This document shows, in pieces, positions 85 through 64,000 of a stretch of DNA of 64,000 bases. The stretch is taken from the NCBI GenBank assembly GCA_964199315.1, contig OZ116699.1, forward strand, positions 29,450,001-29,514,000. Reading direction: 5' to 3'. Below the pieces are notes generated by a model. The model was given only the letters and a program-made list of their open reading frames with translations, searched no databases and was not told the DNA's origin. This stretch comes from Orbicella franksi. Lineage: Eukaryota. The translations under genes and the position numbers were made by a program. How positions within the stretch are numbered: position 1 is the first letter of the stretch; each line of letters begins with the position of its first letter.

Positions 85-513
85 CTCACAATTCTAAATC
101 GACGTTTAAAACGCATCACAAGGCGCCTTCCTCGCCTGTAAATCTTTCTAAATCGCCTTCTAAACCATACACGCATGACGCAGCCACGTCTTACGCGCCT
201 TCCTCTTCGCCTTCGCCGACGCCGTCGTCTCATTCTTCTCTTTCTCCGGCGTGATCTTCTTCGTCTTCGCCTTCGTCTTCTTCTTCGTATGGTTCTACGT
301 GTCCTCGGTCTTCTCAGAAGCCCTTTGTATTTTATTCGGAATCTGCCGCGTACTATACGCACTGGCCACATTTTATTTCTGAATCGGATACGAGGTTTTC
401 CGCGGTAATATCGCAGTAATCGCCAGCGCCGACCAAAGCGGAACTTTATTGGCCTTCTGCTCAACCATCGCCATCTCTTGCCATAGCGAATTCCAATCCT
501 GGAATTGCGGTAC
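85..513 (-). CDS. E49 phase-2 repeat exon (gene continues left of window)
   Basis: 429 nt, TTATTAG|G ... AG|GTAAGG; ends in a half-module like the other phase-2 exons. Confidence 0.88.
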
Positions 514-6500: not shown

Positions 6501-9500
6501 ACGGTTTCTACGGCGAAGTTTAAACCATCTTCGCCTCTTCCATACACTCCAGCGGCCACGGCGACACCTGCACAAGAAGAAAGAGATACATAATTTGAAA
6601 ATTGTAATCTGATATGAGAGCAAAAGTTACTCTTAACACTTGGAATTTAAGATTTTCATTTAAGAAGCGAGCCAAATCAACATATAACGTCCGAATCAAA
6701 AAGCTACGGGCACACAAGCAACTAATTCACGCAAAAGGCATATCTGCTTGTACCACACCCATTAACTGACTATTAATTAAACACACAATCTGATTGGCCA
6801 CGTCTGTAACAAAAACTCATGTCACCCCCTCCTAATAATTAAAAAACTAGACCGCTCGATCTCGGTTTCTATCGGCTGACTGTTGGTGTGGGGAGGAACC
6901 CCGAGAAAGCTATCAAAGTCGATAGAAACTGAAAGGGAACTGCCTAACCGGCGGAGCATTCGGGAAAAGGTGGCTTTGGAGACATATGATTTGATTGGAT
7001 TGGCTTTCATGACTGACTCAGCGCTGGTTTCACAGAGGGAATTTGAAAGAGAAGTTTAACTCTGACTGGAGTGGTATTCATATGTTTCGTTATGGAGGAC
7101 TCCCCTAAAAATGTTTTCCGAAAGCCAGTGTTCAACTTCCTAAAGGTGATTTGGTCAAACGGTTTTCGTAAGTGATCAACCACCGGATATTTCGGAAAGG
7201 AAAACAGCGTTGAATTAGTGAATATCCACCGATCCCTTTTTTTGTCCCGTGCCAAGACCCCGCCGGCAACGAGAGACAGGTGGTTCTGAGGACGAGGATG
7301 CAGGCCTGGAAGGCGTATTTTCGGGGAAGGAAGACTTCACCAGAAATCTAATAAAAATTCATTTGTCAAGTACAAAAATTTGACGGGGCTTGTCCTTCTG
7401 TATGCGAGAACTCAAAACCTGGATAAGACTTCTCTTATGTAGACCTCTCATCTAATTAATGCGAACCTACTTTTAATAATATACAAGGATTCCCTTACCT
7501 GATCTTCAGAATTCCTTTCCTGGTTCGGAATCGCAAGTATCCCCTTCGTCGGAAGACTCTTCTCCATTTTCTACCATACCAAAATCGAACCTTGTATCTA
7601 CGACGTCTTCTTCCTCGCTTTCTTCCTCCTCTCCACAACTTTCTTTTTCGTCGTCGTCTCCTTATTCTGCGTCTTCTTTGTCGTCTGTACTTCCTTCTTA
7701 GCCTTCTTCTTCGCTGTCTCCTTCGTCTAAGATATCTTCGTCGTCGTCGTTTAGTTCTCCTGCGTCGTCTCCTTATTCTTCGTCGCCGCCTTCTTCTCCT
7801 TCGTATAATTCGCCTTCTTCTCCTTCTTCGATACCCTCGCTTTCGTCTTACAATTCTCTTCCACCCTCTCCTTAATTTAATCCTTACTCCTCCTCTTCGG
7901 ATCTTTATTCTACATCTTCGCCTGCCGTAGCGCACACGGAATGCACGCTTGTAGCGCACAACTGTTTTCCATCGCTTGTTGACCAGGACTCTTAATCGTC
8001 TACTGGGTCTCCTCAAATACCTCCACCTTCCGCGACGGCGCACATAGAGTTTGCCTCTGGTGCATCTTATAGGGGAAATGAAAACAACAAGTCAGGTCAT
8101 TTTACCCTAATATAGGGATAACAGCGAAATCCTGACCAAACCCTCTCCGAAGGTTCGACATATCTTCCGAAGCAAAGCAATAATGAGGAAAACAAGGAGT
8201 GCAATCATTAAAATTCACTGTACTAATGTAGAAAAAGTATCAACATCAACCTCACGATTCAGTCTAGGTAGGGGTCTAGGTAAGATACACGATTTATCGA
8301 CTTACTACTAAGTTAAAAATGGTAAGAATGTTATTTTGCGTCCACGCTACGGATCGTTAGCCTGTGAGACTAAATCAACGAGAAAACAAAACACAGAAAA
8401 ACAAACAAACAAGTACAAACATTGAATAAGGTCCAAAACATATCACATCCCAAACCTGATTCGTCTTGGCTTCTTCCTGAATCGGAAGTACAACTTTTGT
8501 CTCAGGCGGTAGACAGGTCTCCATCTTTTATTATACTTCAGCCGCAAGACACTGTAACGCTGTCGTCTTCGTCGACGGCGCCTTCTTCTTCTTGCCCTAC
8601 GTCTTCTCCTTCTTGTTCTTCTTCTGCGTCTTCGCCGTCTTCGCCTTCTTCTCCTAACCTTTCCTCTTCGTCTTCTATTTCTTCTGTATCTTCTACGCCT
8701 TCGTCGTCGTCTCCTCCTTCTTACTTTCCTATATTTTCTGCGACTTCGCCGATTAATTCGTCTTGTACGTCCGTACCTTCTCATTTTTCGTCCCCTCCTA
8801 CCCAATCGTCGCCCCTTCCATCTTCGCCACCGTCGCCTTTTAAGCGTTCTCCATATCTTGCCATACCTCATCTTAACACGTGAGCGAATTATTCTTATTT
8901 TTCTCCATCGTAAACCGAAGCGTATGCATAGTTTTCGTCTTATTATACGCGCATGTCTCCATTTCCTTCCTGCGTAGAACTTAAGCTGGCGCGCTGTTCT
9001 CCATCCTTTTCGGGATTTCGTTAGAACTCGCCCCCTGTTGAACCTGGTGAGGTTTACCGGGAAAAAAACTTTAGTAACAAAGCGACCCAATATTCTTTAT
9101 AGGGTGAGTGAGTGACTGAGTGAGTGATGAGTAGTGGATGGTCTACTATGCACCTGCAATATTTTTCGTAGGATTATCCGAGCATTATACTAAGATTGCA
9201 CACTATACCTTGCGCATACTGAAAGGTTTTTATCCTTGTTATTATTCTTCTCTTTCGATTTCCACTTGCAAAACTACACGTCTATATCATAGTTATTTAA
9301 ACTGCTCATACCTTATCCAAATCTTTCTTCTATTGAAACGGAACACTAGGCGCCCTCTTCGTCGGTACACCTTCCTCCATCTTCTGTAATATCTGATCTT
9401 CATTACACAGCCACGCCTTCTTCTGCGGCCTCGACGTCTTCTTCTGGGTCTGTATCGCCTCACTCGTTTCCTTCTTCTTCGTCGGTTTCGCCTCCTTCTT

Positions 9501-12500
9501 CGCCTTCGCCTTCGTTGTCTACTTCGTCTCCTTCGTCTCCTCCTTAGCCTCTCTCTACGCCTTCTTCGCCTCAACCTTCTTCTTCTTCGTCTGTGTCTTC
9601 GCCTTCTTCTTCTTCGTCGTCGTCTTCGCCTGGACACCCTTCGACGTCGATACCTAATCCTCTTCCATTTTTTATTCACTCGTACCGCCACTCTTCCATT
9701 CCTGTAGATTCTTATACGTCTGTACCTTCTCATGTAACGAATTTGGAATCCTGCACGAACCCCTCGCCATAGTCGTAGAAGCTTGATTTGAACGTTACGG
9801 AGTTTAATTGGCCTTCTTCTGTAGCGAAGTGTTATTGACTTGCGATGAATTCTAAAATAGAATGGAAAAACATTACATAGAGCACGTTGAGGTAAGAATA
9901 ATTGTCAATAATCAATCATGCTTTAGTGTTCGATTTTGAGGCAACTTTGACTGGCTGCTAAATGCGACAAAGTAATTCTATTTGAAACCAGCGCGAAGAC
10001 AACTCTTTACGGTCCAGAGACAAAAATCTTAATTTCAAACAAATAATTTTCGAGTTAACTCAATGACTAATGATTGCAAACACCGTGTGGATAAGGCAAC
10101 TCTGCAGTCAATTTTTACCTCAGTGGAAGATATTATTCCCACATTAACAACAGAACAAAAATAACTTCAAGCCTAGTGATAAAATAATCGTACACCCGTG
10201 TGCATGGCAAACGTCCATTCAAAGTTCCCGGGCTGAATTCAAATCATTTTTGCCCCTCTTTTGTTGCGCTGCAGGATCACATCAACGAAATTTGAATATC
10301 GTCTGCAGCCAATAAAAATTGTGTGTTCTAACGGCCAACATCCACGCGGCTCAAACGTGATTGGAGGGATAATAAACAAACTCAGATTCACATGGTCCAA
10401 ATTCGTGCTGTGACTGGATAAAAACTCTCAGGTGTATCTGTTTGAAGTCGTTACACTGTTATTATTTTGGGTTGAAAAAAATGGCAAATCAGAGGTTGCG
10501 AAGCTAATCACAGCGTTGGAAAAAATATCTACATAAGAGGGCGTTGGATAAGCTCCGGCTGTATGGACCACTTGGCCCGACGCAGAATTAACCTGGTACG
10601 ACACATAGGATAAATGTAATGGAAGCACCCCAAATATGAATCCCTAATATTTTGATATCGGTCCGTTTAGCTTATATTTCGTAGTAATCCGAGAAATACT
10701 AACGTACTTTCATTAGATGTCTCATAAGGACTGGGAACTACCGAATTCACGAATTTGATTGGCTGAAATTGATATTGAGCACGGTATAGATTTTCCCACC
10801 CAGACCGGCATCTAGACTGGTTACATTTTGCGGTGAAAAAGTTGCAAGCTAATATAAACGAATATTGACGATTTTCTTTCTAAAATATTATTGGAAGTGC
10901 CAAAAAGCCTGATGAGAAGAAAAACAGTAAAGAGAACGAGCAAACTTTGGCAGATTTAGGTTCAGCTCATCGCCGTTCTAAAGCAAAATCAGTCAGCTAG
11001 TACAAACCAGTTACATTAACCGAATTAAATTTTTATTATAACATAGCCCGCGCGCTGGTCCTATCTGATTCCTATTCAGCCATCATGAAAAAAATCTCCA
11101 TTTACGCACGGCCGTGCGTAAATAACATGACGTTTGCAGTTTTATTTTAGCTGCGGTACTTCCGTCGAGTTTAGCTGCGAGTTCCTTTTGTTAAAGTTTC
11201 GGCGATGTGAACATTATTCTGAACAATCATTCAATCCTGGCTTCTTGCAAACACTACTGGCTTCGAGACTTTGACTTTTGCTAAGCTGAGATGTTTACTA
11301 AAAGCTGCGCGTATATCGAGTTATGGATGCACTTGGGAAATTTGGAGAGCATTCAGGAAGTTAGAGTTGCGCCTCGAGCAACTCTTACACTTCTTGAGTG
11401 CTCTCCAAACTTCCCGCGTGCATACATAACACGATATACGCACGCTAAGCATGAACCGATTGTTTATTGTTTGCCATTTACTGTACATCTTATTAACCTG
11501 GTTTAGTCGGTCTGTATAGGAGAATCTTGACCTCTTTCGTGTGGACACACCTCACTGCGCTCGGTCAGTACTCACGAACTCAGTCAAGATTCTCCTATAC
11601 AGACCTCCCGCTCGGTTAATAACAGCTAATTATTACATCGCTAGCGCTGTGAGCGGGAAAGATAAACCGAATCCTGTGCTGTGATTGGCTACCCGAGCGG
11701 GCAAGATGGCGCTATCTTGCCCGCTCGGGATTACCCGCTGTGTCGAGCAAGAAATTAGTGAAATTTTTCCATATAATAGTTCCTTTATTGACTAAGCTTG
11801 TTCGATCAAGATGGATATAGGCCTCGTTCGTTTTGCCCAAATGAAAGAACTTGGCCATATCCAGCCATCTTGACCTCACGTTTGGTTAATAAACCATATA
11901 TCATCATTCTCTATAAGTCCTCGGCTTAAACGTAACCATCGAGTAGGTAACTGTACTTCTTTTAATTTTTCTTACCTGACTGGGTAACGTTTTCTTCTAA
12001 CACGGACAAAGAGTCGCCTCCTTCTCCTAGTCAAATATCTCCATTTCCTTCTGAAATATACTCGTATCCTACAGCGACGTCTTCGCCTTATTCGTCTTCG
12101 CCTTCGTCGTCTTCTTCTTCTCCTTCGCACGCGTCTCCTTCTTCTTTGTCGCCGCCGTCTTCTGCGCATTCTACGTTTGTATCTTCTTCTCTTCCTCAAC
12201 TTTCGTCTTCTCCATCTTGTTCGACGTCGACGTATTAGTCTGCGTCTACCTCCCCGTCTCCTGCGTCGACGCCTCGTAATCCTTCTCCATATTTTTCTGA
12301 GTTTTAGGTAAACCCTTCCTCGTCGCAGTCGAAGTTTGACGGTTCTTCTCCTGACCCGGATCCTCCAGCGTCGCCCGTACCGTTGTACACCTCGCCATCT
12401 TTTGTACACTCTAACTTTCAACCGTTTGGTGAAACGAAGTATCTTACGCCATCTTCCTCGTTTACTTCTTACATAAATGCTTCCTCTGCGGAATCTGGTC

Positions 12501-15500
12501 ATAGAAAGAGAACATTGTTAGGAACTATGATTATCCATAAAATCCTAACGGATCAAAAGAGTGACTCATGTCTAGTTAACCTTTTCAGCAATCTCTAAAT
12601 TAAAGGATTATAAACTACAATGAATACATCGTGTATACCACTACAAATGATATGTACCAGGTTTTACGAGAACTGAGAATATCCCCACACTCCTGACAGC
12701 ATATGCTATTTAAAAGACGTAACTTTAAACGCTAAGCGAGTTTTGGAGAACTTGAGAATTGTCTTGGTTTGTCCAATAAGCTGAATCCGTCGGGTTGTGG
12801 AATATTATTAGGAATAAGCAGAAAAAAGGAATCTTAAGGACTACCAACCGCGCGCGGTTTCACACTGATTCCCATAGCACTAGTAGTTCTCCGGTGAAGT
12901 TTCGATATTATCGTAAAAAGCAAGAACAAACCGTCCACGTTTTTCTTTATTCTTCTTAACAAATAGATTCAATCTTGCCGCGCGTCTTATCAGTAAAAGA
13001 TCGCAGATGACGTCAAAATGTGCTAAGAACATAAAAGTGGCACGGTGTGTCACTGATGTTGTTACCAAAATTTGACGTCTTCTGTGATCTAGACGCACGG
13101 CAACATGGAACCTATCTGTTTTATATAATAAAAACAAACAGAACAACTGTTACTGACGTTATCTGTGCGTCTGTCATAAGTACGGACCAAACAAAATGCG
13201 GGAATAGTTTGAGTTATCAAATAAATTCCATAGATCATAAAAAATGAGGTCATGAAGTGTCCAAAACTTTGAAGTGAAACCAGGCGTTTGCAGCTTGCGG
13301 TTCCACTCGAGTTTATAATTTAATAACCCTATGGGCCTAATAGCGCGACGAGGCGAGATGATGATGAGATGATAAGCGTGTAGATCATAAAAATGTGGTT
13401 GATTGGTTAACTACCCCTTCCACATCAATACTATAAGAGGAAAGACCTAATTGCATACATACGATACTCCGCCACTGATACCTTGTTGGGAGCAGATCAA
13501 GTTTGTCAGATGAGCGCGAAATCACGACCTCTTTGTAATCACGTTGATGCGTAGGCTGACCTTAAAGACGCAAAATCCCTGAAATTCATACCGAACTCGG
13601 CCAAACCTAATCCGGTCACATCAGATTTCGCAGGATTTTAGGAAAGCAGGCAACCCGCAGTCTGATAAGCTACTGGGGTAGATTTATACTTATCCTATAA
13701 AGGAAACTACTCTAAACTGCTACTTATATTTTTCATGCTCGCAATGTTAAAGGCTGAATCAGTCTTTTTGGAAGATTTCAAAGAAAGTACCTTAATCGTC
13801 GTTGTCTTCGTTTATAGGTGAATGTGTACTTGCGGCCCCGTCGGATTACTGTTCGCCAGCGACGTCTCCAATAGAAACGTAGTCGGCTGCGCCTTCGCCG
13901 TCGTCGCTTGCGTCTCAGCTTGCGTAGATATCGCCTTCTCCTTCTACGCCGTCGGCGCATCCTTCGCCTTCTTCTTTGTTTTCTTCGCCTGAGTTTTCTT
14001 CTCCTTCTTCTTGACCGTCGCCTTCTTCCTCGTCTGCCATATCGTCTTCGTCTGCGCCTCAGTCCCTTCCATCGTCCCTTATAGCGTAATGTCAATCGCC
14101 CGTATCTGATTCGTATCATTCTGTACCCCTTTTTGTAGAGGAGCCTAAATCGCCCTCGATAGACACGCAGCCTTCTGTACCTTCGGCCATACCTGATCTT
14201 AATATACGGTTTACGGTCAACACGCCATGTTCCTCTCCAATAGACCCTTACTGTCTTACGTTGGATCCTGTGGGACATTGACAGAATGATAAAGGTTACA
14301 AAATAGAGCCATAACAAAATTCTCAAATCTGATTAGCCATCAGCGACACCAATTTGTACATGCGAATTGACTACATGTTGTCCAGGCATCTAGAAATAAT
14401 TGGACGTTAAAAAGCAAACTACCACGAAACAGAAGACCCATTTTGTTAATTTCTCGTATGATTACTGACCAAATCGAACCAAAAGAAGTCGTACAACCAT
14501 TATTAATTTAACACGAGAATAAAATAGAATAGTAATAGGTCAAGTACCGTAAAAATCTCAAGAGGTCTACAACTATTTGGCAAGTGCAACACTCGCGCTA
14601 CGTTTTTTTTAAATTTTACAAGTCGCCTTTTTACGGCGCGCGTTTAACGTGCAAACACGTGTAAACACGTGTAAGGCTTCAGCACTAACCGAAACGTCTT
14701 GAAGTAACATCATAAAAACAGTTAGCGGCAAACCACTATCTTACAATGTCATCTCTTAACTACAATTACACAAGTGTTAAACACTGGGCAAGGATTGACC
14801 TATAGTCTACGACAGGGGTGGAGGCATTTTCGAAGGGGTTCATTGTATGAAACCTTAATATCGGATTATTACCATATGTCGACTAAGGAGGACTAAACAA
14901 CCAGCGTACCTGATTAATCTCCATCCGTAGCGCCCGTAGCGGAATCTCAATGAGTTCCCTCTCCTAAATACGCGCCTCCATTTACCGTAGTAACGATAAA
15001 TGATTTGCGTTCCTCTTCGCCTTATTTTTCGCCTTTGCCGTCTTCGCCTTCTTCTGCGTCGTCTTTGTCGTCTTCGCCGTCTTCGTCTTCTCCTTCTTCG
15101 TCTTCTTTGTCTTCGTCTCCTCCTCCTTCTTCGCTTCCTTCTTCGGATCCTCCGAGTTCTCTTTCCTCGTCGATATTTTCTTCTCATTGTTATCCACCGG
15201 CGATATCGTCTCATTTTCACTCTTCCGTAGCGTATTTTTAGCATCCTGATCCTCCGGCCGAAACGGAAAAATAATCGCCTTCGGCGAACTGTTAACGGAC
15301 GCCATCCACGTTTGTAATAGACTCTGAATCGCCGCCTTGTACCTCGTATGATTTGCCATCGTCTTCCGTATTTGAATCTGAATATGCCACGGTAAAATCT
15401 GGTGATTACAAAGTAACAACAGTTATATTAGAATTTTCATCTGTCAACAGTCGATTTTTAAGGCATGGCCAGGAAGTGTTATTAATCTCCATCGATCTTC

Positions 15501-43423: not shown

Positions 43424-43456
<33 letters not shown>

Positions 43457-46400: not shown

Positions 46401-49400
46401 CCGACACTCCGTCAGGTTCCGCGAGATGAGGTTCTTACAACATAACCTACTAACTCCATAGTACAAATCTACGTTAGATTACTCTTATTTCTCTTCGTTT
46501 ATCTTGTTCTAAGAAGACCAACACTCCGTCACAAGATAACCTTCTAACTCCATAGTGGAAACCTTCGTTAGATTATTCTTATTTCTCTCCCTCTCTCTTG
46601 TTCTAAGAAGATCAACACCCTGTCAGGTTCCGCGAGATGAGGTTCTTGCAAGATAACCTACTAACTCCATAGTACAAACCCACGTTAGATTACTCTTATT
46701 TCTCTTCGTTTATCTTGTTCTAAGAAGACCGACACTCCGTCAGGTTCCGCGAGATGAGGTTCTTACAACATAACCTACTAACTCCATAGTACAAATCTAC
46801 GTTCGATTACTCTTATTTTTCTCCCTCTCTCTTGTTCTAAAAAGATCAACACCCTGTCAGGTTCCGCGAGACGAGGTTCTTACAAGGTAGTTAACCTAAT
46901 AACTCCATAGTACAAACCTACGTAAGATTACGCGTATTTCAAAGGATATAAGTTCTACTTACCTCGACGCCCTCTATAACGTCGACGTCGCCTTCTTAGT
47001 CGAACTACGAAAAAAACAACAATACCTCAGGACTTTACAAGCTAGCAAATACAAATACTTACGAAGGATAAATAAGAGGTTATAAAATTGTTACTGCGTT
47101 TCGAATTTCTAACAAGCAACGACGAAATACTACTGCCCCAAGGTCTTCCAGCATTGTCTCGAACCCATTTAGTTTGCTATAGGCCAGTCTTTCTCGACAG
47201 AGCTGTGATCTCATAGCTATTTTAGGAAACATTGTTGTTCAGCGATCTCTCACGATTAAACAGTAGACGAAAAAAAGGGAATTTAGGTGTACTGATGCAA
47301 GCTTTTCGCATAATTCTAACCTTGAGAAAATAATACTGGAACAATTGAGCAGTTTTGGTCTGGGCAAGGAGCTATGTAATTTCTGTAACGGCTTAATTTG
47401 CGCAGACAACCAACGGACAAAGAAATTTAATCACTTTATATTTAGAGAGGATATAACAAATGTCCATTTTAACACAGAAACTAGCCATCCTTACTAAAAA
47501 CGGAAAGCAAAAATTGAAGCATACAATGATGCTATAGCAGCCTATAAGAGCCTCAGCCTAAAGAAAAAATACTTCAATTATTTAAAAAAAGAGCGAAACT
47601 TTGAGGATTAATCAATCATTTTAAAAAAGAGCGGAACTTTGAGGATCAATCGTACCTTTGATCGGTCTGGAGATTGGTCTCCATCTTCTTCCGTACCTCA
47701 GTCTCCATTTTCCCCTCCTTCTCTTTAACCAGCGTCGCTTTCCTTTGTAGCGGACATAACGCCGGATCCTGCATCCCAATGGCCTCCATTTCCTCCTGAC
47801 GAACACCCGCCATTTCCCACGACGACGCACGATTCTTACACGGCGACGATTGAACACAACCTTCAGTGTAAACCGTGGAATGGTAATAAACCGTCTTGAT
47901 ATACGGACTTTCCAGTAACGGCCGATTCTACGTATCGGACGCCAAGCACCTCCGTAGAAGATGTATCGTCGTCTTCTTCTGAATTTTATTCTGACCCATC
48001 TGCGTCTGAAGTACAGAAGTAATCTTCGCCGCAGCTTGGGTATTCTGTACGAACGCTTTCCTATTTTAAACGACCATCTGCGAAGACGTCTTAACCGAAG
48101 TTTACGTCTTCTGAAGTAAACGAGCCGGCGTCGTCGACCTGCCGCAAAAGAGATCAATGCTATTCTTAAAAACAGACCGCAAGATAGAATTGAAGGGGCT
48201 TCAGGTTTCACTGATCGGTTGTATTCAATGAATGGATACTCTACCTAACAGTTCTTTTAGCCTGTAGGCTCCGACTTTGTTGATAATAATTACTTTCTAT
48301 CTATCGTATTAATCAACTTCTTATGTAATTACTATCTTCCATGCAAATATTTTTCTTCCTAGCCAATAAAGATTATTGTGATTGTGATTGTTATTCATAC
48401 ATTGTCTCAGCGTTAGACTGAAAACGTTTCAGGCAAGAACAGCTCAACACACATTACACTGGCCCTTCCCTAGTGAGGTCTTTTCGCATATGTTCTCGTC
48501 TCCCTCATCACAACAGCGAATATTCACTGGGACACAAAATGCAAAAACTAAGCTTTGCAAACAACAGAGCCGGAGATTATTATGGGACTGGGCATAACAC
48601 CTTTTTCCAAGTCAAACGTTTTTTAAGTGCTCACAGATAAATACTTACGCCGTGGGAACTTTCTTCTTCTTCTCCTTCCTTTTCGTCGGTAACGACCTGA
48701 AACAATAACGAAAAAAAATATCAACGGCATATCAGGCGAGTTTAGTCGAGCCATGCTTCGTATTTTCGCGAGACGTGGTCGAGCCAAACTATCCGTGGAT
48801 AGACCAAACGGGCCTGATATGTGAAGCGTACCGAAAAAGGTACGATTAGTTGTTTACCGAACCCAAATTCCGCCAAGTGACCATGATATCGTGGCCTATG
48901 AGGTCAGTGTATTGATATCGCAGGATGTCAGGATAGTAGACACGGCTTCTGACTGGCTGTTTCCGGAATTGGGTATGGTTAAAACAAATATCTCAGCAAG
49001 AAAAACGGCAAGCAGATCACCGCTCTCTTTGGTTTCTACAAGTCAAAAGGTAAACGCGATATGCTATAAAGTTCTCTTAATATAATAAAGAGCTTATCAT
49101 TATATTTTCAAGATACTTACGAAGTTTGATTTTCCTCCATCTATTTCCTAAACGAGCTTTCCATTTCCCACGTCTTCTCTTCAGCCAAACTCTCTTCTTT
49201 TTGTAAGTTACAAAACGTCGTATGCCACACATCATAGGCCTCCATCTTTTCTTAGTGAACAAACGCCATCTTCTGCGGACTCGCTTGATTTTCTTATAAC
49301 GGCGACCGATACGAATCCTGAGCCTTAAGCGTCCAAGGCGTCTCCAACGCTTCCCGTATCGGTATCTCCAAGAACGTCCTCGACGTCTTAAACGACACCA

Positions 49401-52400
49401 ACGTCTTCTTACACGGAGCTTCCACGTTTTACGTTTTCTTTTCACCCTTACATACTTCCTCTTGAAGCGTGCATATAAACGCCTTCTCATTCGGCGAATC
49501 CTGAAGACTTTTCCTTTGACTGTGGTCGTCCATATTCGGTATCTTCTGACGCGCCTTCTACGTCCACCGAGTTTGACGTATCGGCGCCGTCGACCTGCAG
49601 TGAGATTTTTTCAGAAAAAGAAAAGGTTTATAATCAAGAGGCCCGCCTTAAAATATACTGACGAAAGGAATTTGTTTCAGGAATGTAAATAATAATACCG
49701 TTCGTTCTGTAACCGTGCAAAGGGATCTATACGCCAAAAAGTACACAAATCTGGCTAAGAAACCTTCACTCAAAACTATTAAAAGAATAGTTTTAAACTG
49801 TGCGTTCCGCAATTTTAGGTCATTTTTCGGGTCAAATGCTCTATTTTTTCAAACGACATCTTCGACGACATCTGGCGTTTTTATGCCTTTCGGTTCGAGT
49901 CTACTTGAACTGGGTCATCCCGAAGAAAGCTAACCAATCAACATGTATACTGAGAACAGTGGACGGGTAGCTTTTTTTCGTGAAGGCAAATAACGGTCTC
50001 TTTGACTTGAAAACATAAAGTACTATTGATTCCTACTTTTGTGTGATATACACTCTACAGATTCAGTCCTAGACGGCGACCTCTCGTAATTATTAATTTC
50101 ACTCGAGAAATTTAGCTTGAAAACTCGTTTTGCGACAACTAAACCGAAACATTTCAAAATAGAAAAACCGTAGCCACGACAAAACATATTAAAAAGTTAT
50201 AAAAACGTTCACTGGCTCTATAAAGTTAAGACTTCCGAACTTTCGGTCGTCAGACTGCAGCCTGCCCTTCGATGGAAAAAAATAGAAAAAGTAACAACTA
50301 CCAACATGTTCAGAAATATGTCGGACCATAAAAGGTGGTTAACAAAAATGTTAAACCAAACTTGTAATTCCCTCACCTCTACCAAGTGGGATGCGAGCTG
50401 ATGCGTAACTTGGACCTCGTCTCTGTGGGCGACTCATGTATCTGATCCAATATGGTCTTCTACGACCAACATACCCGATCGCGGCAAGACTGCTTCTGAA
50501 GCTCAGTCTTATTCTTCGTGGATCGATGTGCAGCCTTTTGAGCACATATTTGTAGTATCTACCAAACCGATACGCCTCGTCTTGGATTGCAAGTACAACA
50601 ATACACCTACAATTGCCAGAAAATGTTAGCATAAAGAAAAATGAAACTGAGACTATTGCATTACATCAAATGAGGTCGGATTTTCATAAATTGTATCGGA
50701 TAAGGGTGATATTCTAGCTAGTTGTAGCTGTGTCTACAACAGGAACTTGAAACACTTAACAATCCCATGATGACGTATTTCCTAAGATTTTGTACAAACA
50801 AAAACAACAGCACAATTTATTTACCCCATTAGTAAGTAGTTTATAAATACAATTATTTCAACTGGTTTTTTGAAAAATTAAAAGATTATCAGCTCCCTGA
50901 GTAGAAATTGAACGTGTAATCTGTGATGAAATGGGGCTACGAGAAGACGTGAAGGCTGCCATGCGGTACTGAAACCGCGAAGGAAAGCTTGGTGGAAATC
51001 CTGAAAATCCAGCTTGCTGAAAACCAGGATTGAATTTCATTGCCTTATGAATTTAGCCTTGATGTTGGATGTGATGAATAAGAACCAGTGGTGCTCGTTG
51101 GCGTTGGACGTCTTGGCCTGCAAGCGGTTGATTTGAGGCTTCATTTGCACTGGTTTGGTTGGAGGCGTCGTTTGGAGTGTTTTCGTTTTGCACTTCTTAT
51201 ATCCACTGATAATGTGAGGCAGCTCTTTCCTTTGATTATCGTCTATTTCATCGTAGTCGTCTAACGAAGATTCGTGCATGGACTGTTATTTCACAGATGA
51301 CATTGTGCGGTTGACCAGAATTCTCCACTTGTGACACCAATGTTTTCCTCATGCTGTGGTTCGAGAACTTCTTATTTGTCTTGAGACAGGAGGCCATAGA
51401 TTTCGTGGTATTGCTGATGGTGTTTTGTCCCATGCGAACTTTGGTGTATTAGACATCTGTTGACTGAGGACGATTTATGACGCTCAGATAGAGAGGCCCT
51501 GTGTCCTTCATTCCCTGGGATCGCTTGCACAATCAAAGCTTGAAGAGCCACACTGGATCGGTTTTTCCGCCGTCGGTGGTATACATAACTTGTGGCGTAG
51601 TTCTTCGCCTGATAGACAGATCGCCGCTTCTTGTTTTGGTTGGACCTTCGCGGAACTCTACGACTTCAGTGCAATCTTCTTGTTGTCCTATCACAAGGTC
51701 CTCCACGTACACGTCGTGGTGTTCCTGGCTACCTCTAAGCCAAGTTGTTCAGTCAAGTTTTTAAAGTTCACATTGGTCAGTACCCTTCCATTGAAATACC
51801 CTAGCTGACCTTTCTCCGACAGAGCCGATTCCTCTTCTGGTGTTAATGGCTGTGCATAGTTTGGTCCCTTACCCTTTCCTTGCTGGCGCAGAGAAAGTCC
51901 CTTCGCATTGAGGATTTCTTGTGAGTTATGGACCCCTCTCGATCGCACGATACTCACTGGATAGCTTTGGTCCTTTAGCTGACGTTCAATTGTTCTTTGC
52001 ATGATTTTCTGCGATTGAGGCTCGTAATCATGTCCGTCCCTTTCTTCTACTTCGGCGTAGAACTTTGCCAGGACCGTGTTTCTTCAAAATCTATACCGAA
52101 AGTTGGAAACGACTACCGGAAAAGTTGATTTTCAACCTGGAGGGGCTGGTCATCATCATTTAGAAACCGTAAGTAATTAAATTTATCCATTTTTCAAACT
52201 TAGCAAAGTCTTGGCCACAAAAGTTGCGAAATTTGCCCAATAATGGCTTTTTTGTCTTTCATTTTCCTACAATGTGATTGGTTAGTTTTAAAAAGCCTTA
52301 AAATCTGATTGGTTGTTTTGTTTTAGCGTTCCACTCTCAATGGCCAGAAACAAGATGCGATTTAGAGTACAAAATAGCGCGATTCGGGAATAAATCGCCC

Positions 52401-55400
52401 TGCTGAGAACGAATCAAATTTCAAGGATAACCAGTGATTTTAAAATGGATATAATAAAAGATGTAATCAAACTGGGACTGTGAAAATAAATTTTATCATC
52501 AGAAATCAACAGCTAAAAGTGGTGAAAACAAACTTACCCTCGTCTGATGCGGTAAATAAATCTCTTGAACCTCTTTGCCTGATAACGGCTGCCATGTGTG
52601 TCAAAAGACCTCCTTTGTACAACACGCCCTATTGCAGTAAAAACATCAGCAATAAGATTTAAAGAAAAACACGACAGGACAGTCTATATCATCATTGATA
52701 TAATCTAGACCATTGATAATTAGCTTGCGAATTCAAGAGGCTAGAATCGAAAACCACAGCATAAGGGTGACACCACACATCTAAGTACAAAGATACAAAT
52801 AGTTTTTGAGGTCATGCTACTCTTGGTACATTGAGGGCTCACCAGTGTTGCGGTCGATAACACAAACGTCAAAACCACGCTTGGGCAGAGAATCTCTTTC
52901 GAAGCGTACCAAAAAGGTAGGAATAGCTTTATTAACTATAAGTCCTTACCCGTCCGGCGGTTGATAACGATAGAATTAAAACCACGCCTACGCAGAGAAT
53001 AATCTCTTCTGAAGCGTACTAGAAACGTAGGAATAGCTTTAACAACTATAAGTCCTTACCTGTCCTGCGCTTGATAACGATAACGTTAAAACCACGCCTG
53101 TGTAGAGAATAATCTCTTCCGTTGACTCTGATGTAGGCCCGCGAGCGTCCATACAAAGTACGTCCGCGCTTCTTATCAACAAAACCTTGACTTTCCACTC
53201 TCACTCTTACATATCCTGTACATAATAACAAAAAGAAGCACGTTTATGCGGAAGTCGAAACTCGAAGATATTCTGATCTCTCAACTTTCCAAATGTATTT
53301 TAAGAGAAACTTGGTATAAAGAGGAAACTTACTTAAATATGACAGTGGCTTCCCTCGAAATATCTGATTACTAACTTATTCCCGACAGCCGAGTATTTGG
53401 TGAAAAAAAATGTTGTAAAAAAATGTTAGCAATTTTAACAGTCTTAGACGGCGACTTACCATAATTATAAATGTCACTCTGTCACTTTTTTCATTTTTAT
53501 CCATCGAAGGCTGTAGTCTGACAGCCGAAAGCTCGAAAGTTTTAACTTTATTTAGCCAATGAATTTTAATGTAAACCGAAACCGTTGAAAAGAGTACAAA
53601 ATTTAGGATCGAAACTAACCAATCAACAAATGGCAAAGTTTCCTGAGAGGTCTGCGAAAGTACACGCTTTCGTGTTTTTTTTTTCTTTCTTTTGTTCTGT
53701 TATAGAGCGATTGTTTTTATTCTTTAATGCTACAGCGATCTTTAAAGAAAGATCGCTATCCTTGTACTCAAGTAACGTTCTGATTGGTTTTCTCTTTACC
53801 AAGCGGCCCGTTTGAGTAGTTGCACTGCAATACCCGATGATAAGCTGCCTATAGACAGGGTCAAAATGATATTGTTTTGATTTGAAGTTTTGAAGAAGAG
53901 CATAACGTCTGCGCAGTTTCGCGGTCATCATAGGTAGCAAAACCAATAGAAACAATTCTTTTTTTTTTATGCTATTGAATGTCATTATTTGAATTTTTCA
54001 AAACAATGCGTCCATGTTTAAATAACTATCGTTCCTCTACACTTGAGAATTAATTTTTTGCTATGGGGATATTGGAAAAATGTAATTGACACCATTTTCC
54101 AATCAGTGTCTCTGATTACACTTACAGTACTAAATAGGACGATTTGTAATACTGAAAGATTCCATATTTAGGGAAACATCTTTATCGTTGTTTTGCTTTA
54201 TGAGTATCTTACCCACTCAAAGTAGGAGTTTTAGAAATCAGTTTGTGCCTCATGAAAACTCTACTTTTTGCTTACGAAATCATAAGTTCCAATCGTTCAA
54301 AGCTCTTATTCGCCTTACTAATCGCGATACATATCTTTTAATGTCAGTTGTAAGAATTTGTTCTAACATGGAGACAATATCTCGTTATTCCTGTCATCAA
54401 TCGGCATAACATTTACTGATATTGCAAGGAGAATATGGATGTTTCTCATTCAAGATATTTGGAGGTGTTTGGGGATCATGGTAGTAAGTACATACCTCTT
54501 CGCCGTCGCATTCCCCATCGCCTTCGACGTCTTCCTCGCCAGCGTCGTCTTCCACCTCTTCTACGTCGTCGTCGTCGTCGTCGTCTTCGTCGTCTTCTTC
54601 TGCGTCGTCGTCTCCTTGCTCGTCTTCTTCTCCTTCTTCGTATTCGTCTTCTACGCCTTCTCGCTGCAAAATAAATGCCCAGGTCTGTTACGACCTTTTT
54701 AGAAGTCGTAACAGCGATTATGCTCACAACTTTCAGGGTAAATGAAATCATATTAAACCTGAGAATTGGAACTAAGTTAGAATTGTCCCACACTCAACTG
54801 GCTGAGGGATCTACATTGTAGCTCAACGCACTAGTCGAAGAAAAAGTATGAATCCGGCATCATGAGCGCGAAAACGCATCCAAGCAAAATCACACTTTAA
54901 TTTGGTTTCACTGGATCCTAACTGATTTGAAGACAATTATTTGGTAATTGATTGGCTTAGGGGACAGTGTCTCTTCCTAATTTCCATATTATTGCCAATC
55001 ACCACAACATATACAAATAAATCGGATATAAAGATTCTGCCAAGCCAATGAAAATTGCCATTCTGTTGAAATTTCACATTTTTCAATTTATTATTAGGAA
55101 TATTAAATGTAGAAATGACAGAAAATTGTAGAAAACTCGGCAATAAAATCCGAGTTCCATCCAGATGGGATTCGAACCCACGACCCTCCGTGATCTAGCC
55201 GGACGCTCTAACCACTGAGCTACTGGAGACTCTATGGTGAGCAAGGGTGAAATGTGGGTCTTTGACTGGAACCGCATCGCGCAGTCACACAGCCAAAGAA
55301 TGACAGGTATTTACCAAGGGTCTTTTTTTTCTTTTTAGTTGATATTTTTTTGCCTTCATTATTCTTTCATTTCGAAGATAATGAAGTAACTTTATAGCAA

Positions 55401-58400
55401 GCTGCCAGCCAAACTTATTAAATTACGATTTCTGTAAGCCTGTTTCACGGATATTTTTAGACGATTGTAAGGCTACGCAAACGCTAAACCATACAAACAG
55501 AGGACGGTTGCTTTTGGAACTCAACCAACTCAGCCCTTCAAGTGATGTTATTTTAACTGTTCACTTACACATTCGACGCGGTCTTCTCGTTTTTATTTTC
55601 CTTCTGCGAGTCCAGTGGCCATGGTATCTTACCCGGACCGTCCTTCGCCTTCTCCTTACTCGCAGGAAACGACCGTGATATCTTATGCGATATTTTCGGC
55701 GACGAATAACCGGCTTCCACTTGCGCCCTAGCATCATGTACAGCCGTCTCTTCATCATCATCATACGCGCCCAGACTCGTCTGAACTTAATCATCAACAG
55801 ATTCGCCTTGACTCGCAGACGTTGCAACCGTCGTCGATATTTTAAATACCAGCGACCTCTACGCTTCACAATAGGTTTCCATTTGCTTCCAAACCGGATG
55901 AACCAACTTCCGCGTTGTTTTTTAGCTCGACGCCATCGTTTCATGTAGTATATTTTCACATGTCGCCCGTTTCTGTTTAGTTTGTATCTCTTTCTGTGAA
56001 TCGTCAGGTACCATGTTCTCCCTCCTTTTCTCAAGCGTCGGTAACGTCCTTTGAAATAGACTCTTTTGCTAGCTGATTGAGTGAAAGACAAGTGATATCA
56101 AGTAAGACAACGATACTGCCGCTAGTACCGTCAGCTGCTAAATCCTCTACTGCTTTATCGCAATTTCGGAAATTAAATAATCAGTCTGACTTAGCAGGCT
56201 CCCAGTACAATTGCTGCAGTATTTTAGCAGCGTTAAGGGACGTATGCACAAAATATCAACATAATATTTATTATACCTAGATAAATTAGACGTAGTAGAT
56301 ATCATTATAACATATTCTCACTTTTGATGTATTATTTTTAAGCCTTTTGTATTTTTTAAATTTGTTTGTGTTGACTAATTTTATCATGAGCGTTTGGCTC
56401 GAATGAATAGGCAACTACCCCGTGTCACGACTTTAAATAAATTATTACTATTACTACTGGGTGAGTCTATTAATTCCCATGTACATATCTTAGTCAAACA
56501 TTGGCTAAACCTCGAATGCTCTTGTTACAAGAGTTTATATTATTCAGCATTAACTGCTCTGGAATCTTAAAATAATGGGTTGAGAAGATAAATCATTTTA
56601 ATTGTGACAATTAACACAATTGCGTCAAAAAATAATTGGGCCATTAGTATTGTTTGAAAAAGCCTTTGCTTCACTTAATGATTGACTTTCGGTTTAAAGG
56701 TACTTTATCCTGCCCCTGTTCATAATGTATAGCTCACAATAAATACTATTGTTTGCTCTGTTTGCTGAGAAGGGCTTTGACAAGGAATCAACAAACTCTC
56801 TAATTCTTCGGGTTGACTTTAGCTATGTGGCTGGCCACATCGCCGCTTTAATAATCATTTCAATCCAGTGTCAATTATAAACGAATGAAGGAAGCCCTAC
56901 TCAACAAAGTTGAGGGTAAAAATCCTCATCTCATAGACAAAGGTATATGTGGCTAGGATAAGGGTGGGGGGGGGGGGGGATGGGGAAAACAAAGTAGGAG
57001 ACGATCCCTCTATGCGGTCAAGTCCAAAACCACATGGCATGGATACACCGCCTAGAGGGTTCCCAGAATGTTCCAATATGTTGCAAACCCTATCCCCCAC
57101 CCACCCCTAGCCAACATAGCTGGTTAAGTTTAAACATTAACAGAGGGCAGCATAATTTTCATTAATGTTCATTGTCTGGACAATAAATAATTTAACCAAC
57201 ACTCTAAATTCAAGTGATTGGTTCAGTTCTTCGTCATGGCAAAAGATCATCGGCTCCTCAAATATCATGAACTGGTCGTTTAAATTTGATAACAAAAGAA
57301 AATAAGGAAATTATCACCACAGGGAATTACAAAAACACTTACGTCTTCGTCGACGAAGTATTCTCCTTCGTCTTCTTCTTCGTCGCCTCACTCGACGAGC
57401 TGAAGAGGTTTATTTTTGACAAAAACATATATATGAGAAAGTGAAATATTAAAATGACGGGAGCAATGAATGCCAGGGTTTCCATCTCAGTAACATTGTC
57501 ATTATGAGATATCAAGTAAATTAAAGAACTCATAATACCAAAACTAGACATTATTGAGTTTGCCGAAAAAATACAACAAAAAGCGACCCCCAGTATGAAA
57601 GCTTATAATTTTAAAAGAGGAAAACTTCTTTGAATAAACCTGTGGTTCTGTTTTAAAGAAAAATAAAAAGTACTGTTAGTCGACGTTTCGATGCATCAAA
57701 CTCAACTCAACAACTTTGACTTCAGCATTAACGACCTCAATCTTGAGAATGATGCTTGATGCATCGAAACCTCGATTGTCATTGCTTTTAAACTTTCTTG
57801 TCAAATGCTTTAACAAGCAACTCATCATTCATTGTGTTTTTAGACATGGAAATGCGAGGACCCGCTCACAACCAGCACTACTGTTTTTCGGCTTTTAACG
57901 TTACGGCCGTATTTGGTTAGGTCAGGGTTTAAAATATTTCTTTTGAAATGAAGTATTCGTATCTGTTTTTGCATATAACCTTTTTACAAAACAGATGTTT
58001 CGGTTGCAAAACTATTGTTAGGCATACTAGTATCTTGATGGTCCAGTTGGATACCTTCATCTTTTTCAAAAGAAGGGGGATAAACCTTCAATATATTAGA
58101 AAACGAACTCTTAAAGCAGAATACCTCTGTAAAAGCGAATGCTGTAATTGTTTTCAGTATTATTTCATGTCTAGCTAAACGCTGTCGCTTTCTCTTGAAT
58201 TACGTGACATTTTTAGGCCTTTTTACAGTACGTAACATTTAAATAAAATACGTACGTCTCCGTCTTCGTCTTCTTCTACGTCGCCGTCGTCCTCTTCNNN
58301 NNNNNNNNNNNNNNNNNNNNNNNNNNNNNNNNNNNNNNNNNNNNNNNNNNNNNNNNNNNNNNNNNNNNNNNNNNNNNNNNNNNNNNNNNNNNNNNNNNNN

Positions 58401-61400
58401 NNNNNNNNNNNNNNNNNNNNNNNNNNNNNNNNNNNNNNNNNNNNNNNNNNNNNNNNNNNNNNNNNNNNNNNNNNNNNNNNNNNNNNNNNNNNNNCTTCTC
58501 ACTCGCCGCCTCTTCCTTCTCGTTCTTCTCCTCCTCGCTGTGATAAAAATGACACCAAAGTGACATTTCATAACATAAGCCGCGCAAATTTTCGGGAACT
58601 TACACCTGGTGAGAACACTGAGGATGCTGGCGGCAATTTATTTTTCAGACGGAATCTTTGTGTAACTTTGGTGATTTCACCAAAAAGAGATAAGGGAAAT
58701 GTACTTTGTACTTTTTTTTCAAACAAGAAGAAAACGTAGAGGTAACAACAGACCACTGGCAATCAAAAAAGCGAATTCACAGCCGTAAACCAGATCAGAT
58801 TGTCCTTTTTTTAGGAAATGACGGCAAGGTTTTGTATGTTGACATCCTTTCAGAAAACACCCTATAAGAAAGCGAATGCTCAATCCTGTACTTCTATTAA
58901 ACAATTAGATTATGAGCTCGAGATTTACGAGGGTGCAGACTATAGCACTATTCTGAAACTTTCATTACATCTTATATGTGGATATCAGTGTGATAAAGCC
59001 GTGACTTAAAAGTCAAATGAACCAAAATTTAGACATCTTATCTTCAGCCATTTTGTAGCGAAATGTTTAAAAAAAAAACATGTAAAAAGGAGCTTATGCG
59101 GAAATTTTTTCTTTCTGAAACGTGAAAAGGAGTAAAAAAGTTAAAAGTACGAAGACAGCGGATGGCTTCACGAAAACGTTTCCAAAATGACCGCGCACTT
59201 TAATGGAAGGAATGGAACTGAGACTCTGCTTTGTGACGTCACTGTTGTCTTGAACATTGCTGCGTTTCTGCGTCAGTGAGTCTTTCGTGGGGAAGGTTTT
59301 GGATCTAAATACAAGCCTTATTTTACTCTAGAAATGGCCGAGGCTTTCGCCCGCTTTCGGCAGGCATTATTCGCTTGTTTTTTGTTGCCGGCTTGCAACG
59401 TTTCATAGTGAAGTTAAAAATCGTCGGTACCGCGTCTTTCTTGACTACAAGTTGACGAAGCTTGAAAGAGGGTCCCAACAAACTCCTTACTACAAGATTT
59501 TGCTCAAAGCTGTCTTTGGTAAAGTGTTTTACACAAACGTGCGCATGTTTCGAGGGCACGAAGCATTCTCTTTTCATTTTGATAAGCCATTAATTATCTC
59601 TTAAGTTTTGGGTCCTGGGGGAACTTGAAAGTGTTAACTTTTGATTTTGAGTGGTTTTCCTCTGAAGTTCACTGTGAACTTCAAACCAAAACAGTTTCAA
59701 ATTTCCCGCATTTCTTGAGCTCACCAATAGTGACGTCACAAGTTTTATTTCCAACAATTATCCGACAATTTTCCCGAGCACTCTACGATTATGAAGAATA
59801 AAAAACAATGATTTTAACATTCCAATATCTCCGCAATGCTTCGTCCAATTCGTTTGAAACTTCAGAATATGTTTATTTCATACTCAATGAACACATTGAA
59901 TTCAAATGAAAAAAAAAATGTCTAAGTTTTGGTTCATTTGACCTTTAAAATGATACCTGTGAAGTGATATGATATCATTTCACTGCAGCGAAATGATATC
60001 ATACCACTTCGCGGTTGAATTGTCCAATCAAATAGACTGTAATAAACTGGTTGGACCAATCAGGTAGCAAGTTATATTTTAGCTGGCGCCAAATTTGGCG
60101 GGAAGAATTTCTCTGCAGTTTTATCCGCGAAATGGCCGCTTCAAGATTTGTGAGCGTTTCCTGTGAAGATATATCTCAGTTTCTCGAAGAGAACGAAAAC
60201 AAGAACACGGCAAGAAAAACCTCTCAAGATGTAGCGTTCTTCAAGACCTTTTGACCGAATGAGAACGCAAATTTACAGGACCATTGTAAGAGAAAGATAC
60301 GCTTCAGCTTGCCCTCTTTCTTGTATGTATTCACTGATATTAAAGGCAACTTTCTTGTACTTTAACTTGGTGGCTTGATATTTTTTAAGCATGTAATATG
60401 CTTACTCGCTCGAAGACTCGCTCGTTCGCGATATGGTATTACAAACGCGTGAACAAAAACGATACCAGGCTCTTAATATGTATTGTTACATGGCTTAAGT
60501 TTGTAACCGATATAACGCGCTCTCCGATTGGCTAGTTCTAGGGCATTATTCCCCCGTAATGCCCACGGGCCGATTACGGGCCTGCAAAACCAAAGCAAAA
60601 CGCCATATAATAAACAACTTATTAACCTCGAACGTTTGGTATTTGCGGGAAAATCTCAAACCTCGCCCTTGCAGTATTAATCTCGCTATTGCTCGGTCAA
60701 TTCGGCAAGGTCTCGATTTGAAACTTTGCTGTAAAGACCTCAATCTCGGATAATAAGGAGTTAAAAATCTATATTTATCTTACCTCTTTTGGGTCTACCG
60801 TATCGACCTCGATATCGCACTCTGAAACGTCTACCTTTCCTCTTTACCACCAATCGCTTACTGCGGTATCGGATGGTATACCGGGGACGTCGTTTCACGC
60901 GCAACCAGCGTCGTTTAAAGTAGATAGAGTATCTTCGTCCAATACACTTAAACGGTCGCCACTTCCCTCGGAAACGGATTCTGAAAGTGCGCGAAGTCCT
61001 AGGCAGGCGGATGTAACGTTTGTTTCTGCGTATCGTCCACTGCCGTCCGCGGCGATAGATACGTTGCCATGTTCCAATGTAGACATACCAGATGTTTCGG
61101 ATACGTTTCAGGGGTCTAAATCTTCCACCATACTTGATCCTCATTCTTCTTCCACCTCGGCGGATTCTGTATCTTATTCCTTTCACTTTAATAACAAATC
61201 GACTCCTCCAACGTCTTAAAACACGTACGCGTCCCTTGAAACGGATTCCTCTTCGTCTCCAGCCTAACAAAAACAACCACGAGTAGATGAAATGATGATT
61301 GTGCAATGGCAAAACATTCGCGTTCCATATTCTTCAACGAGACCATATTATCATCGACATTACTTTCCAGATCTACACTGTCACTTGTTGCTTCGTTTTT

Positions 61401-64000: not shown

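Follow-up and report, generated by a model that had tools for sequence, protein, structure and literature searches.

The extracellular polymers that have been described from corals are polyanions (mucus glycans, acid-rich skeletal proteins and the poly-gamma-glutamate of cnidocysts), and we know of no large cationic counterpart to them. The closest described system is Mlig-ap1, an adhesive/cohesive protein of Macrostomum lignano that is secreted, contains more than 3,600 residues rich in lysine (Lys) and arginine (Arg) around lectin-type domains, and binds negatively charged glycans, its role in attachment being blocked by heparin (PMC6410801). This was the sole useful paper in our literature search, which found no description of a coral protein of this kind. 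Here we analyzed a stretch of 64,000 nucleotides (nt) of Orbicella franksi DNA, hereafter named the window (assembly GCA_964199315.1, contig OZ116699.1, positions 29,450,001-29,514,000 of the forward strand). The whole window is part of one coral gene on the minus strand, transcribed and spliced as modeled below. Its predicted product is a giant modular polycation with at least 5,888 residues in the window and a bead-and-string repeat plan. We consider it fairly probable that this selected and expressed giant gene encodes a secreted, multivalent modular polycation that cross-links or condenses polyanions.

On the minus strand of the window, we found about 40 long open frames. They span 150-220 codons and have 28-57% Arg each, with hardly any aspartate (Asp) or glutamate (Glu). 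Each of these frames has a GTAAG-type donor at its end and a pyrimidine tract followed by AG near its start. Picking of donor and acceptor sites gave 47 exons, and a scan of the introns at a lower threshold added two poly-Arg mini-exons (44055-44029 and 39171-39139), for a total of 49. An earlier note on this DNA had proposed a 49-exon minus-strand gene of about 5,990 codons. Our independent rebuild gave the same exon numbering and about 5,980 codons, i.e., 5,888 plus a nominal 94 codons for exon 5, which contains an assembly gap. Introns follow the GT-AG rule in 48 of 48 cases (46 counted together, the sites of the two added mini-exons examined separately). The weakest splice site of the model is the donor of exon 43 (GTTTGG, at 8456), and exon 44 has two possible in-frame acceptors, 8065 and 8056, nine bases apart. 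No start or stop codon of the gene was found within the 64-kilobase (kb) window, which the gene leaves at both ends.

Residue and codon counts exclude exon 5, and the two sides of its gap were analyzed separately. Joined exons 1-4 give 431 codons and joined exons 6-49 (44 exons) give 5,457 codons, with no stop in either, while the other two sense frames of the spliced sequence contain 305 and 201 stops and shuffled sequences contain about 310 on average. All six Arg codons are used (AGA 33%, CGA 24%, AGG 17%, CGT 12%, CGC 9% and CGG 5%). This mixed use indicates that the Arg runs are not a simple DNA repeat or a microsatellite, and a simple repeat or recent amplification was rejected on the same ground and because nucleotide identity between paralogous exons is limited to about 67-72% and to parts of their length. 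A gene on the plus strand, with frames rich in serine (Ser), proline (Pro) and leucine (Leu), was also rejected. Such frames mirror the Arg codons, the plus-strand frames over the joined exons contain 117-234 stops, and the RNA joints described below read GT..AG on the minus strand only. Of note, open-frame callers pick up these Ser/Pro/Leu-rich frames opposite the poly-Arg stretches (e.g., 8422-8883, plus strand), and the alternative frames of the poly-Arg stretches (e.g., 54400-54687 and 14985-15422, minus strand) read as rich in Glu, Asp and glycine (Gly) or in Lys, threonine (Thr) and Glu. A ribosomal frame slip inside an Arg run would thus turn the polycation into a polyanion.

Alignment of RNA covered 15990-21400 (5.4 kb), with two contig-type runs and two raw-read runs. 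The earlier note had asked for minus-strand junctions in RNA. All four predicted in this interval were found (16445|17619, 18113|18609, 19121|19619 and 20170|20881), both in poly-A contigs (depth 109-223) and in raw reads, with CT..AC ends on the plus strand, i.e., GT..AG on the minus strand. One of them, 19121|19619, is the joint at which the donor of exon 35 leaves TA and exon 36 starts with T, so that a TAT codon is formed, as had been predicted. Depth over exons in the poly-A data was about 70-220 and lower in bins straddling exon edges; in the introns between exons 34 and 37 it was 0-6. The RNA contigs have loose ends that continue the model beyond the interval, reading the start of exon 39 at 15993 and the end of exon 33 at 21374. 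Among sampled words from the same interval, 40-56% were present in 14 RNA runs, where the exon share is 46%. One poly-A run with the same species label contained no exon reads, indicating that expression varies between samples.

Counted over 5,888 residues, Arg makes up 47.4% (2,791 residues), in agreement with the earlier estimate, made by eye, of about half. Lys accounts for 7.8% (462), Gly for 6.0% and aromatic residues for 11.9%, with six Asp and four Glu, for a net charge of about +3,230. Seven of these ten acidic residues fall in an ILEI domain (see below), and the other three are the Asp in exon 40 and the Glu in exons 42 and 47 that had been listed previously. Cysteine (Cys) occurs 34 times, about once per module, and is not paired. 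The share of Arg is 38-55% in the exons of the C-terminal modules and 50-97% in the mini-exons, and the longest Arg run has 28 residues.

These residues are arranged in two kinds of arrays. In the N-terminal half (exons 1-27), all introns are in phase 1 except for a phase-2 intron within the ILEI domain. Its hairpin exons measure 474-513 nt and are as a rule separated by one or two poly-Arg mini-exons (27-177 nt); exons 25 and 26 follow each other without one. The three ILEI exons are placed in the middle of this half, and the change of phase takes place in exon 27. The other 22 exons (28-49) are symmetrical modules of 429-600 nt in phase 2. Each encodes four hairpins followed by a poly-Arg run (about 40-110 residues), a conserved Cys and another two hairpins. 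Tryptophan (Trp) and Gly recur with a period of 18 residues. The unit starts with Trp, a basic residue, any residue and a hydrophobic residue; a basic stretch containing Gly makes up the turn, hydrophobic and basic residues then alternate, and Gly, Arg, Arg close the unit. At 33 of 47 exon junctions the split codon encodes Arg. Together with the symmetry of the exons, this means that exons can be duplicated or skipped without change of frame or chemistry, and the gene offers a clean example of protein growth by symmetrical-exon duplication in which the dominant residue is encoded at the split codons.

To place the gene among corals, protein databases were searched. Matches were short unnamed open frames from coral assemblies or read sets, plus one named hypothetical protein, OS493_017713 of Desmophyllum pertusum. 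Among 1.84 billion proteins searched with a profile, 51 clusters matched, all of them short fragments that look like modules of this gene; the few that could be traced came from corals. The D. pertusum locus (MU826359.1, hereafter L001) is colinear with exons 28-41 of the window. Nine of its orthologous modules align in frame with 58-66% identity (59% and 64% for exons 40 and 41), compared with at most 50% for any paralogue, and the module array therefore predates the split of these corals. Among the counterparts of exons 28-34, five are intact at 58-66% identity and that of exon 32 is broken in this assembly. Gene predictors had been expected to fragment such a gene, and this is the case in Desmophyllum, where the orthologous 21.7 kb are annotated as four products of 790, 254, 66 and 2,554 residues; OS493_017713 corresponds to exon 34 joined by splicing to the first part of the module that follows. 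In the locus of a closer relative (L002), 14 of 14 comparable exons are intact, with no stops and only in-frame indels. Nonsynonymous (dN) and synonymous (dS) divergence over these 14 exons are 0.062 and 0.213, a ratio of 0.29, and protein identity is 87-89% for exons 25-27 and 80-92% for exons 28-34, which are colinear.

The earlier note had named frame-breaking indels in orthologues as a warning sign. None was found in L002, but they occur in five of 14 orthologous modules in Desmophyllum, reflecting assembly error or real decay (L001:6445-6941, 11478-11963, 12604-13168, 14006-14559 and 17704-18033). These frame changes lie mostly in or near the poly-Arg run and in some cases in a hairpin. 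They would fit a locus that is transcribed and spliced but yields no functional protein, i.e., a decaying or untranslated repeat locus whose open frame results from purine-rich exons; so would the difficulty of translating polybasic tracts, and the fact that the product has been read from nucleic acids. We regard this explanation as highly improbable, since 5,457 codons contain no stop where the other frames and shuffles have 200-310, every indel over 14 exons is in frame and their dN/dS is 0.29, the frames are intact in three other coral assemblies, and paralogous exons within the window have diverged to about 27-56% protein identity while all are still open. We hold to be just as improbable a store of arginine and nitrogen (four N per Arg), translated as a reservoir and later degraded, for example in eggs or for the control of symbiont nitrogen. 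The composition would suit a store, but the conserved Trp and Gly, the hydrophobic alternation, the Cys, the ILEI domain and the module-specific orthology exceed what a store needs.

Exons 20 and 22 stand out among the paralogues by being 97-98% identical (42431-42930 and 40492-40991). Their likeness ends within about 15 nt of the exon ends and the introns are unrelated, which points to a recent copy of the exon or to gene conversion restricted to it. Beyond the window, a fragment of a relative assembled by Logan (P0016) carries an acidic tail rich in Pro, alanine, Thr and glutamine, spliced after a last hairpin block. In the other direction, the 1.47-Mb contig of a related coral shows the gene running about 34 kb upstream of the orthologue of exon 2, with more hairpin, poly-Arg and ILEI exons; the walk along this contig reached a last Arg-rich mini-exon and no recognizable first exon.

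The window contains one ILEI (FAM3/GG-type) domain encoded by three exons, enriched in Arg and with a single Cys. Scored separately against PF15711, exons 10 and 11 match consecutive halves of the profile with 15.8 and 15.7 bits (expectation value E of about 0.02 each). Half of the profile is matched with 33.6 bits, above the Pfam cut-off of 27, by a copy from a related coral that shares 57% identity with exon 11, which makes homology of the window domain to ILEI likely. The related coral has at least five such three-exon domains between Arg-rich exons (L005:2587-10453, L006:11847-19091 and L007:8052-10396). At L005:7451-7636 and L006:13443-13613, the third ILEI exon also occurs in truncated form with a Gly-rich stretch after it; these copies look like broken duplicates. 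The predicted protein thus contains ILEI domains; with its domain embedded in at least 5,888 residues and bearing a single Cys, it would not be a member of the FAM3 family.

FAM3 proteins and the stem domain of POMGnT1 are secreted or lumenal. Entry of the coral protein into the secretory pathway is probable because the ILEI/GG family is known only from such proteins. The same domains speak against an intracellular condenser of nucleic acids, whether a protamine-like sperm chromatin protein or its precursor, or a nucleolar or RNA-binding polycation. In its Arg content (47%, with up to 28 Arg in a row) the protein matches protamines, and Arg runs are strong nuclear and nucleolar targeting signals. 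The size, however, is about 100 times that of protamines, and a high-depth transcript in many libraries from at least eight studies, whose tissue and season are not given, argues against expression restricted to spermatogenesis. On balance, this alternative to a secreted polycation appears improbable.

Searches of Pfam with E up to 1 found no family, ILEI aside, for five hairpin or module exons and two homologue fragments, and no profile of choline-binding, MORN, YD, WXXGXW or other Pfam hairpin and short-repeat families matched. A PDB sequence search with the profile of the third ILEI exon gave no match, and a feature search of the protein Atlas returned best scores of 0.55 for a hairpin exon and 0.88 for the third ILEI exon, with no telling family. 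AlphaFold2 modeled exon 17 as an all-beta hairpin meander of fifteen strands (predicted local distance difference test, pLDDT, 83.6; predicted template modeling score, pTM, 0.64) and a C-terminal module as hairpins, a long helix for the poly-Arg run and again hairpins (pLDDT 85.8, pTM 0.43). The model of the hairpin block was compared with known and predicted structures: Foldseek against PDB gave a best E of 0.17 and template modeling scores (TM) up to 0.19, VIA-align in wide mode a best Z of 4.1, under the usual background, and ESM Atlas TM up to 0.37, while the sole match among AFDB clusters was an uncharacterized protein of 889 residues (E 2e-5). Rows for WWE and choline-binding domains in these fold searches were not accepted as relationships. 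In line with the earlier statement that no annotated family has this architecture, no family other than ILEI emerged from Pfam, the protein Atlas, PDB, AFDB or the literature. Neither the repeat unit nor its predicted fold has a described relative, and the protein is very probably a new kind of giant polycation. The 18-residue units are predicted to fold into blocks of antiparallel beta-hairpins, the beads, and the Arg runs of up to 28 residues are predicted to form highly charged linkers, the string.

The hairpins also bring to mind a defense polyprotein. In such a scheme, the protein would be a precursor or a mucus-bound carrier of Arg/Trp-rich hairpin antimicrobials, convertases would cut the linkers, and the freed blocks would permeabilize microbial membranes. 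The amphipathic 18-residue units with their Arg-Gly turn do resemble peptides of the arenicin, tachyplesin and protegrin type, the linkers are dense in R-x-K/R-R sites (903 overlapping ones in joined exons 6-49), and transcripts occur in numerous coral RNA libraries whose labels, which give neither life stage nor tissue, point to several studies. However, the hairpins have no paired cysteines, with about one Cys per module, and AlphaFold2 packs neighboring hairpins into continuous blocks rather than free hairpins. Long-lasting orthology, module by module, fits a structural protein better than a peptide array for defense that evolves fast, and no processed peptides are known. We thus hold a defense polyprotein to be unlikely.

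A secreted polycation that cross-links or condenses polyanions could work as follows. To judge from its ILEI/GG domains, the protein would enter the secretory pathway and act outside the cytosol as a multivalent scaffold. Its guanidinium groups may bind sulfate, carboxylate or phosphate groups of a polyanion. Arg-aromatic contacts, which are known to drive phase separation, could add cohesion, so that the partner would be cross-linked into a gel or coacervate, and the ILEI domains may contribute glycan recognition. Candidate partners are mucus or matrix glycans, acid-rich skeletal proteins and the contents of cnidocysts. The earlier note had proposed an undescribed giant polycation that may complex polyanions: the RNA junctions, the orthologues and dN/dS establish a real, expressed, spliced and conserved gene, and the complexing of polyanions is the part that we infer.

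Several points weigh against this interpretation. The product has been read here from DNA and RNA, and neither the upstream walk nor a protein search with the most upstream hairpin exon revealed an N-terminus or signal peptide. The inclusion of the ILEI exons and mini-exons in the mRNA is supported by frame, splice sites and conservation, and the ILEI exons of the window each score below the Pfam gathering score of 27 bits. Because shallow paralogue alignments underlie the structure models, the fold of the hairpin block is a prediction, and the helix predicted for the poly-Arg run is doubtful. The frame breaks in Desmophyllum belong here as well. Finally, ribosomes stall on long polybasic tracts, and furin-type convertases cleave at R-x-K/R-R sites; with 903 such sites, an intact secreted protein is not a given.

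A more specific version would make the protein a new folded Arg/aromatic bead-on-string biopolymer, the cationic partner that has been missing for the highly acidic polymers secreted by corals, which forms coacervates at a calcifying or adhesive interface. Its partners would be acid-rich skeletal matrix proteins or sulfated mucus or matrix glycans, and the guanidinium groups might concentrate carbonate or bicarbonate. This version remains speculative and we would not expect it to hold in full; if true, the polymer has escaped every trypsin-based matrix proteome, and has so far been found only in coral-derived data.

The coordinates of the 49 exons are given in Table 1. Two assembly gaps fall within the gene. 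One (34921-35055) is inside the intron between exons 25 and 26, with microsatellite-like (TCAA-like) flanks, and the corresponding intron of L002 contains no Arg-rich open frame. The other is inside exon 5, where the flanks read from the acceptor at 58537 and the donor at 58256 give Arg runs in phase 1, with 13 mostly-Arg codons per side in the frame set by the splice sites. The nominal length of this exon, 282 nt, preserves the frame, but the gap length is only an estimate; frame continuity across it is therefore not knowable, and an intron could even hide there.

Table 1. Exons of the polycation gene in the window (all on the minus strand; the gene continues below position 85)
Exon	Position	Length (nt)	Description	Support or remark
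E1	63998-63863		poly-Arg mini-exon	splice sites and frame; runs off the window or starts inside it
E2	63580-63080	501	hairpin exon	open-frame orthologues in four other coral assemblies
E3	62118-61942	177	poly-Arg	splice sites and frame
E4	61263-60784	480	hairpin exon	splice sites and frame; E1-E4 introns all phase 1
E5	58537 (acceptor)-58256 (donor)		poly-Arg mini-exon	contains gap 58298-58494
E6	57399-57343	57	poly-Arg	donor GTAAGT, in frame with neighbors
E7	56072-55569	504	hairpins	donor GTAAGT, in frame with neighbors
E8	54663-54496	168	84% Arg	donor GTATGT, in frame with neighbors
E9	53215-53060		ILEI domain exon 1	
E10	52628-52538		ILEI domain exon 2	PF15711 profile positions 12-41
E11	50606-50377		ILEI domain exon 3	PF15711 profile positions 41-89
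E12	49594-49121	474		phase 1, multiple of three
E13	48696-48649	48		phase 1, multiple of three
E14	48138-47656	483		phase 1, multiple of three
E15	47004-46963	42		phase 1, multiple of three
E16	46029-45916	114		phase 1, multiple of three
E17	45553-45041	513	hairpins	AlphaFold2 model
E18	44615-44526	90	97% Arg	
E19	44055-44029	27	mini-exon	
E20	42916-42440	477		
E21	41364-41335	30		
E22	40977-40501	477		
E23	39171-39139	33		
E24	36960-36922	39		
E25	36497-35988	510		intact orthologue in L002
E26	34517-34008	510		intact orthologue in L002
E27	33305-33050	256	enters in phase 1, leaves in phase 2	intact orthologue in L002
E28	32388-31921		C-terminal-type module	phase 2 on both sides
E29	31590-31081		C-terminal-type module	phase 2 on both sides
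E30	29268-28792		C-terminal-type module	phase 2 on both sides
E31	27514-27017		C-terminal-type module	phase 2 on both sides
E32	26461-26018		C-terminal-type module	phase 2 on both sides
E33	24499-24041		C-terminal-type module	phase 2 on both sides
E34	21372-20881		C-terminal-type module	phase 2 on both sides
E35	20170-19619			junctions seen in RNA
E36	19121-18609			junctions seen in RNA
E37	18113-17619			junctions seen in RNA
E38	16445-15993			junctions seen in RNA
E39	15398-14910			
E40	14267-13791			
E41	12494-11976			
E42	9851-9312			
E43	9043-8456			
E44	8065-7499			
E45	6567-5968			
E46	3871-3317			
E47	2317-1838			
E48	1456-1016			
E49	513-85			

Some introns carry elements of other origin. 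At 16680-16900, in the intron between exons 37 and 38, two libraries showed an RNA depth above 1,000 along with numerous variants and loose ends, which points to an expressed repeat of high copy number resembling a short interspersed nuclear element (SINE) or a miniature inverted-repeat transposable element (MITE), unrelated to the expression of the host gene. The 1.9-kb intron between exons 10 and 11 contains transposon-like open frames of 82-130 residues on the minus strand (51040-52083), the longest of which has no Pfam match. RNA runs hold 33-54% of the interval 49000-53300, where the exon share is 22%, and this excess makes an expressed mobile element likely there. In the intron between exons 4 and 5, an 88-residue frame on the minus strand (59326-59589) matches the THAP family (PF05485) with E 3.9e-5, just above the cut-off, and was probably left behind by a transposon.

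The predicted product of this conserved and well-expressed gene, with a net charge above +3,000 and up to 28 Arg in a row, is at the edge of what is thought to be translatable and secretable. This extreme composition raises questions on ribosome stalling, convertase cleavage and packaging. The gene is a concrete candidate for the cationic counterpart of the coral polyanions, fragmented by standard gene prediction and invisible to tryptic proteomics, and it supplies probes for in situ or single-cell study of coral adhesion, mucus, calcification and defense. The Arg-aromatic hairpin module could also serve as a natural design for materials in wet adhesion or coacervation.

Compared with described proteins, the coral product shares features with several families. 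Members of the FAM3 family are small and secreted; they consist of a single domain and have a signal peptide and conserved disulfides or cysteine pairs. The coral ILEI domain is probably homologous to FAM3/ILEI and the POMGnT1 stem domain, but it is enriched in Arg, has one Cys and is set amid thousands of Arg-rich residues. Arenicin, tachyplesin and protegrin are free, disulfide-locked cationic beta-hairpin antimicrobial peptides. They and the coral units both have 17-21 residues, an alternation of hydrophobic or aromatic residues with Arg and a basic-Gly turn, whereas the coral hairpins are concatenated by the hundreds, have no Cys pairs and are predicted to pack side by side. The period of 18 and the predicted hairpins fit this class; membership was rejected because paired cysteines are absent.

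Protamines have in common with the coral protein an Arg content near or above 45%, Arg clusters and almost no acidic residues, and the coral protein would likewise neutralize the charge of a polyanion. They differ in having tens of residues, being unstructured when free and being specific to sperm, compared with at least 5,900 residues, predicted folded repeats, an ILEI domain and a presence in many RNA libraries for the coral protein. Assignment to protamines or other sperm nuclear basic proteins was rejected: 47% Arg fits, but at least 5,888 residues, where such proteins have tens to a few hundred, and predicted folded repeats do not.

Mlig-ap1 had been named as the closest analogue, and this holds for the architecture, with Arg-rich exons on both sides of the ILEI domain (PMC6410801). 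No sequence relation between the two was detected, indirectly, via a profile search in which the sequence of Mlig-ap1 itself was not compared. Mlig-ap1 is rich in both Lys and Arg; its repeats are short and linear, and its domains include C-type lectin and vWD. The coral protein is dominated by Arg (Arg to Lys about 6:1) and combines 18-residue beta-hairpins and poly-Arg runs with ILEI domains. Secretion and an adhesive role have been shown for Mlig-ap1 and are only inferred for the coral protein. Both lack homologues of known function and both are hard to see by tryptic proteomics; both are giant proteins in which cationic regions rich in Lys and Arg lie on either side of a lectin-type or ILEI domain.

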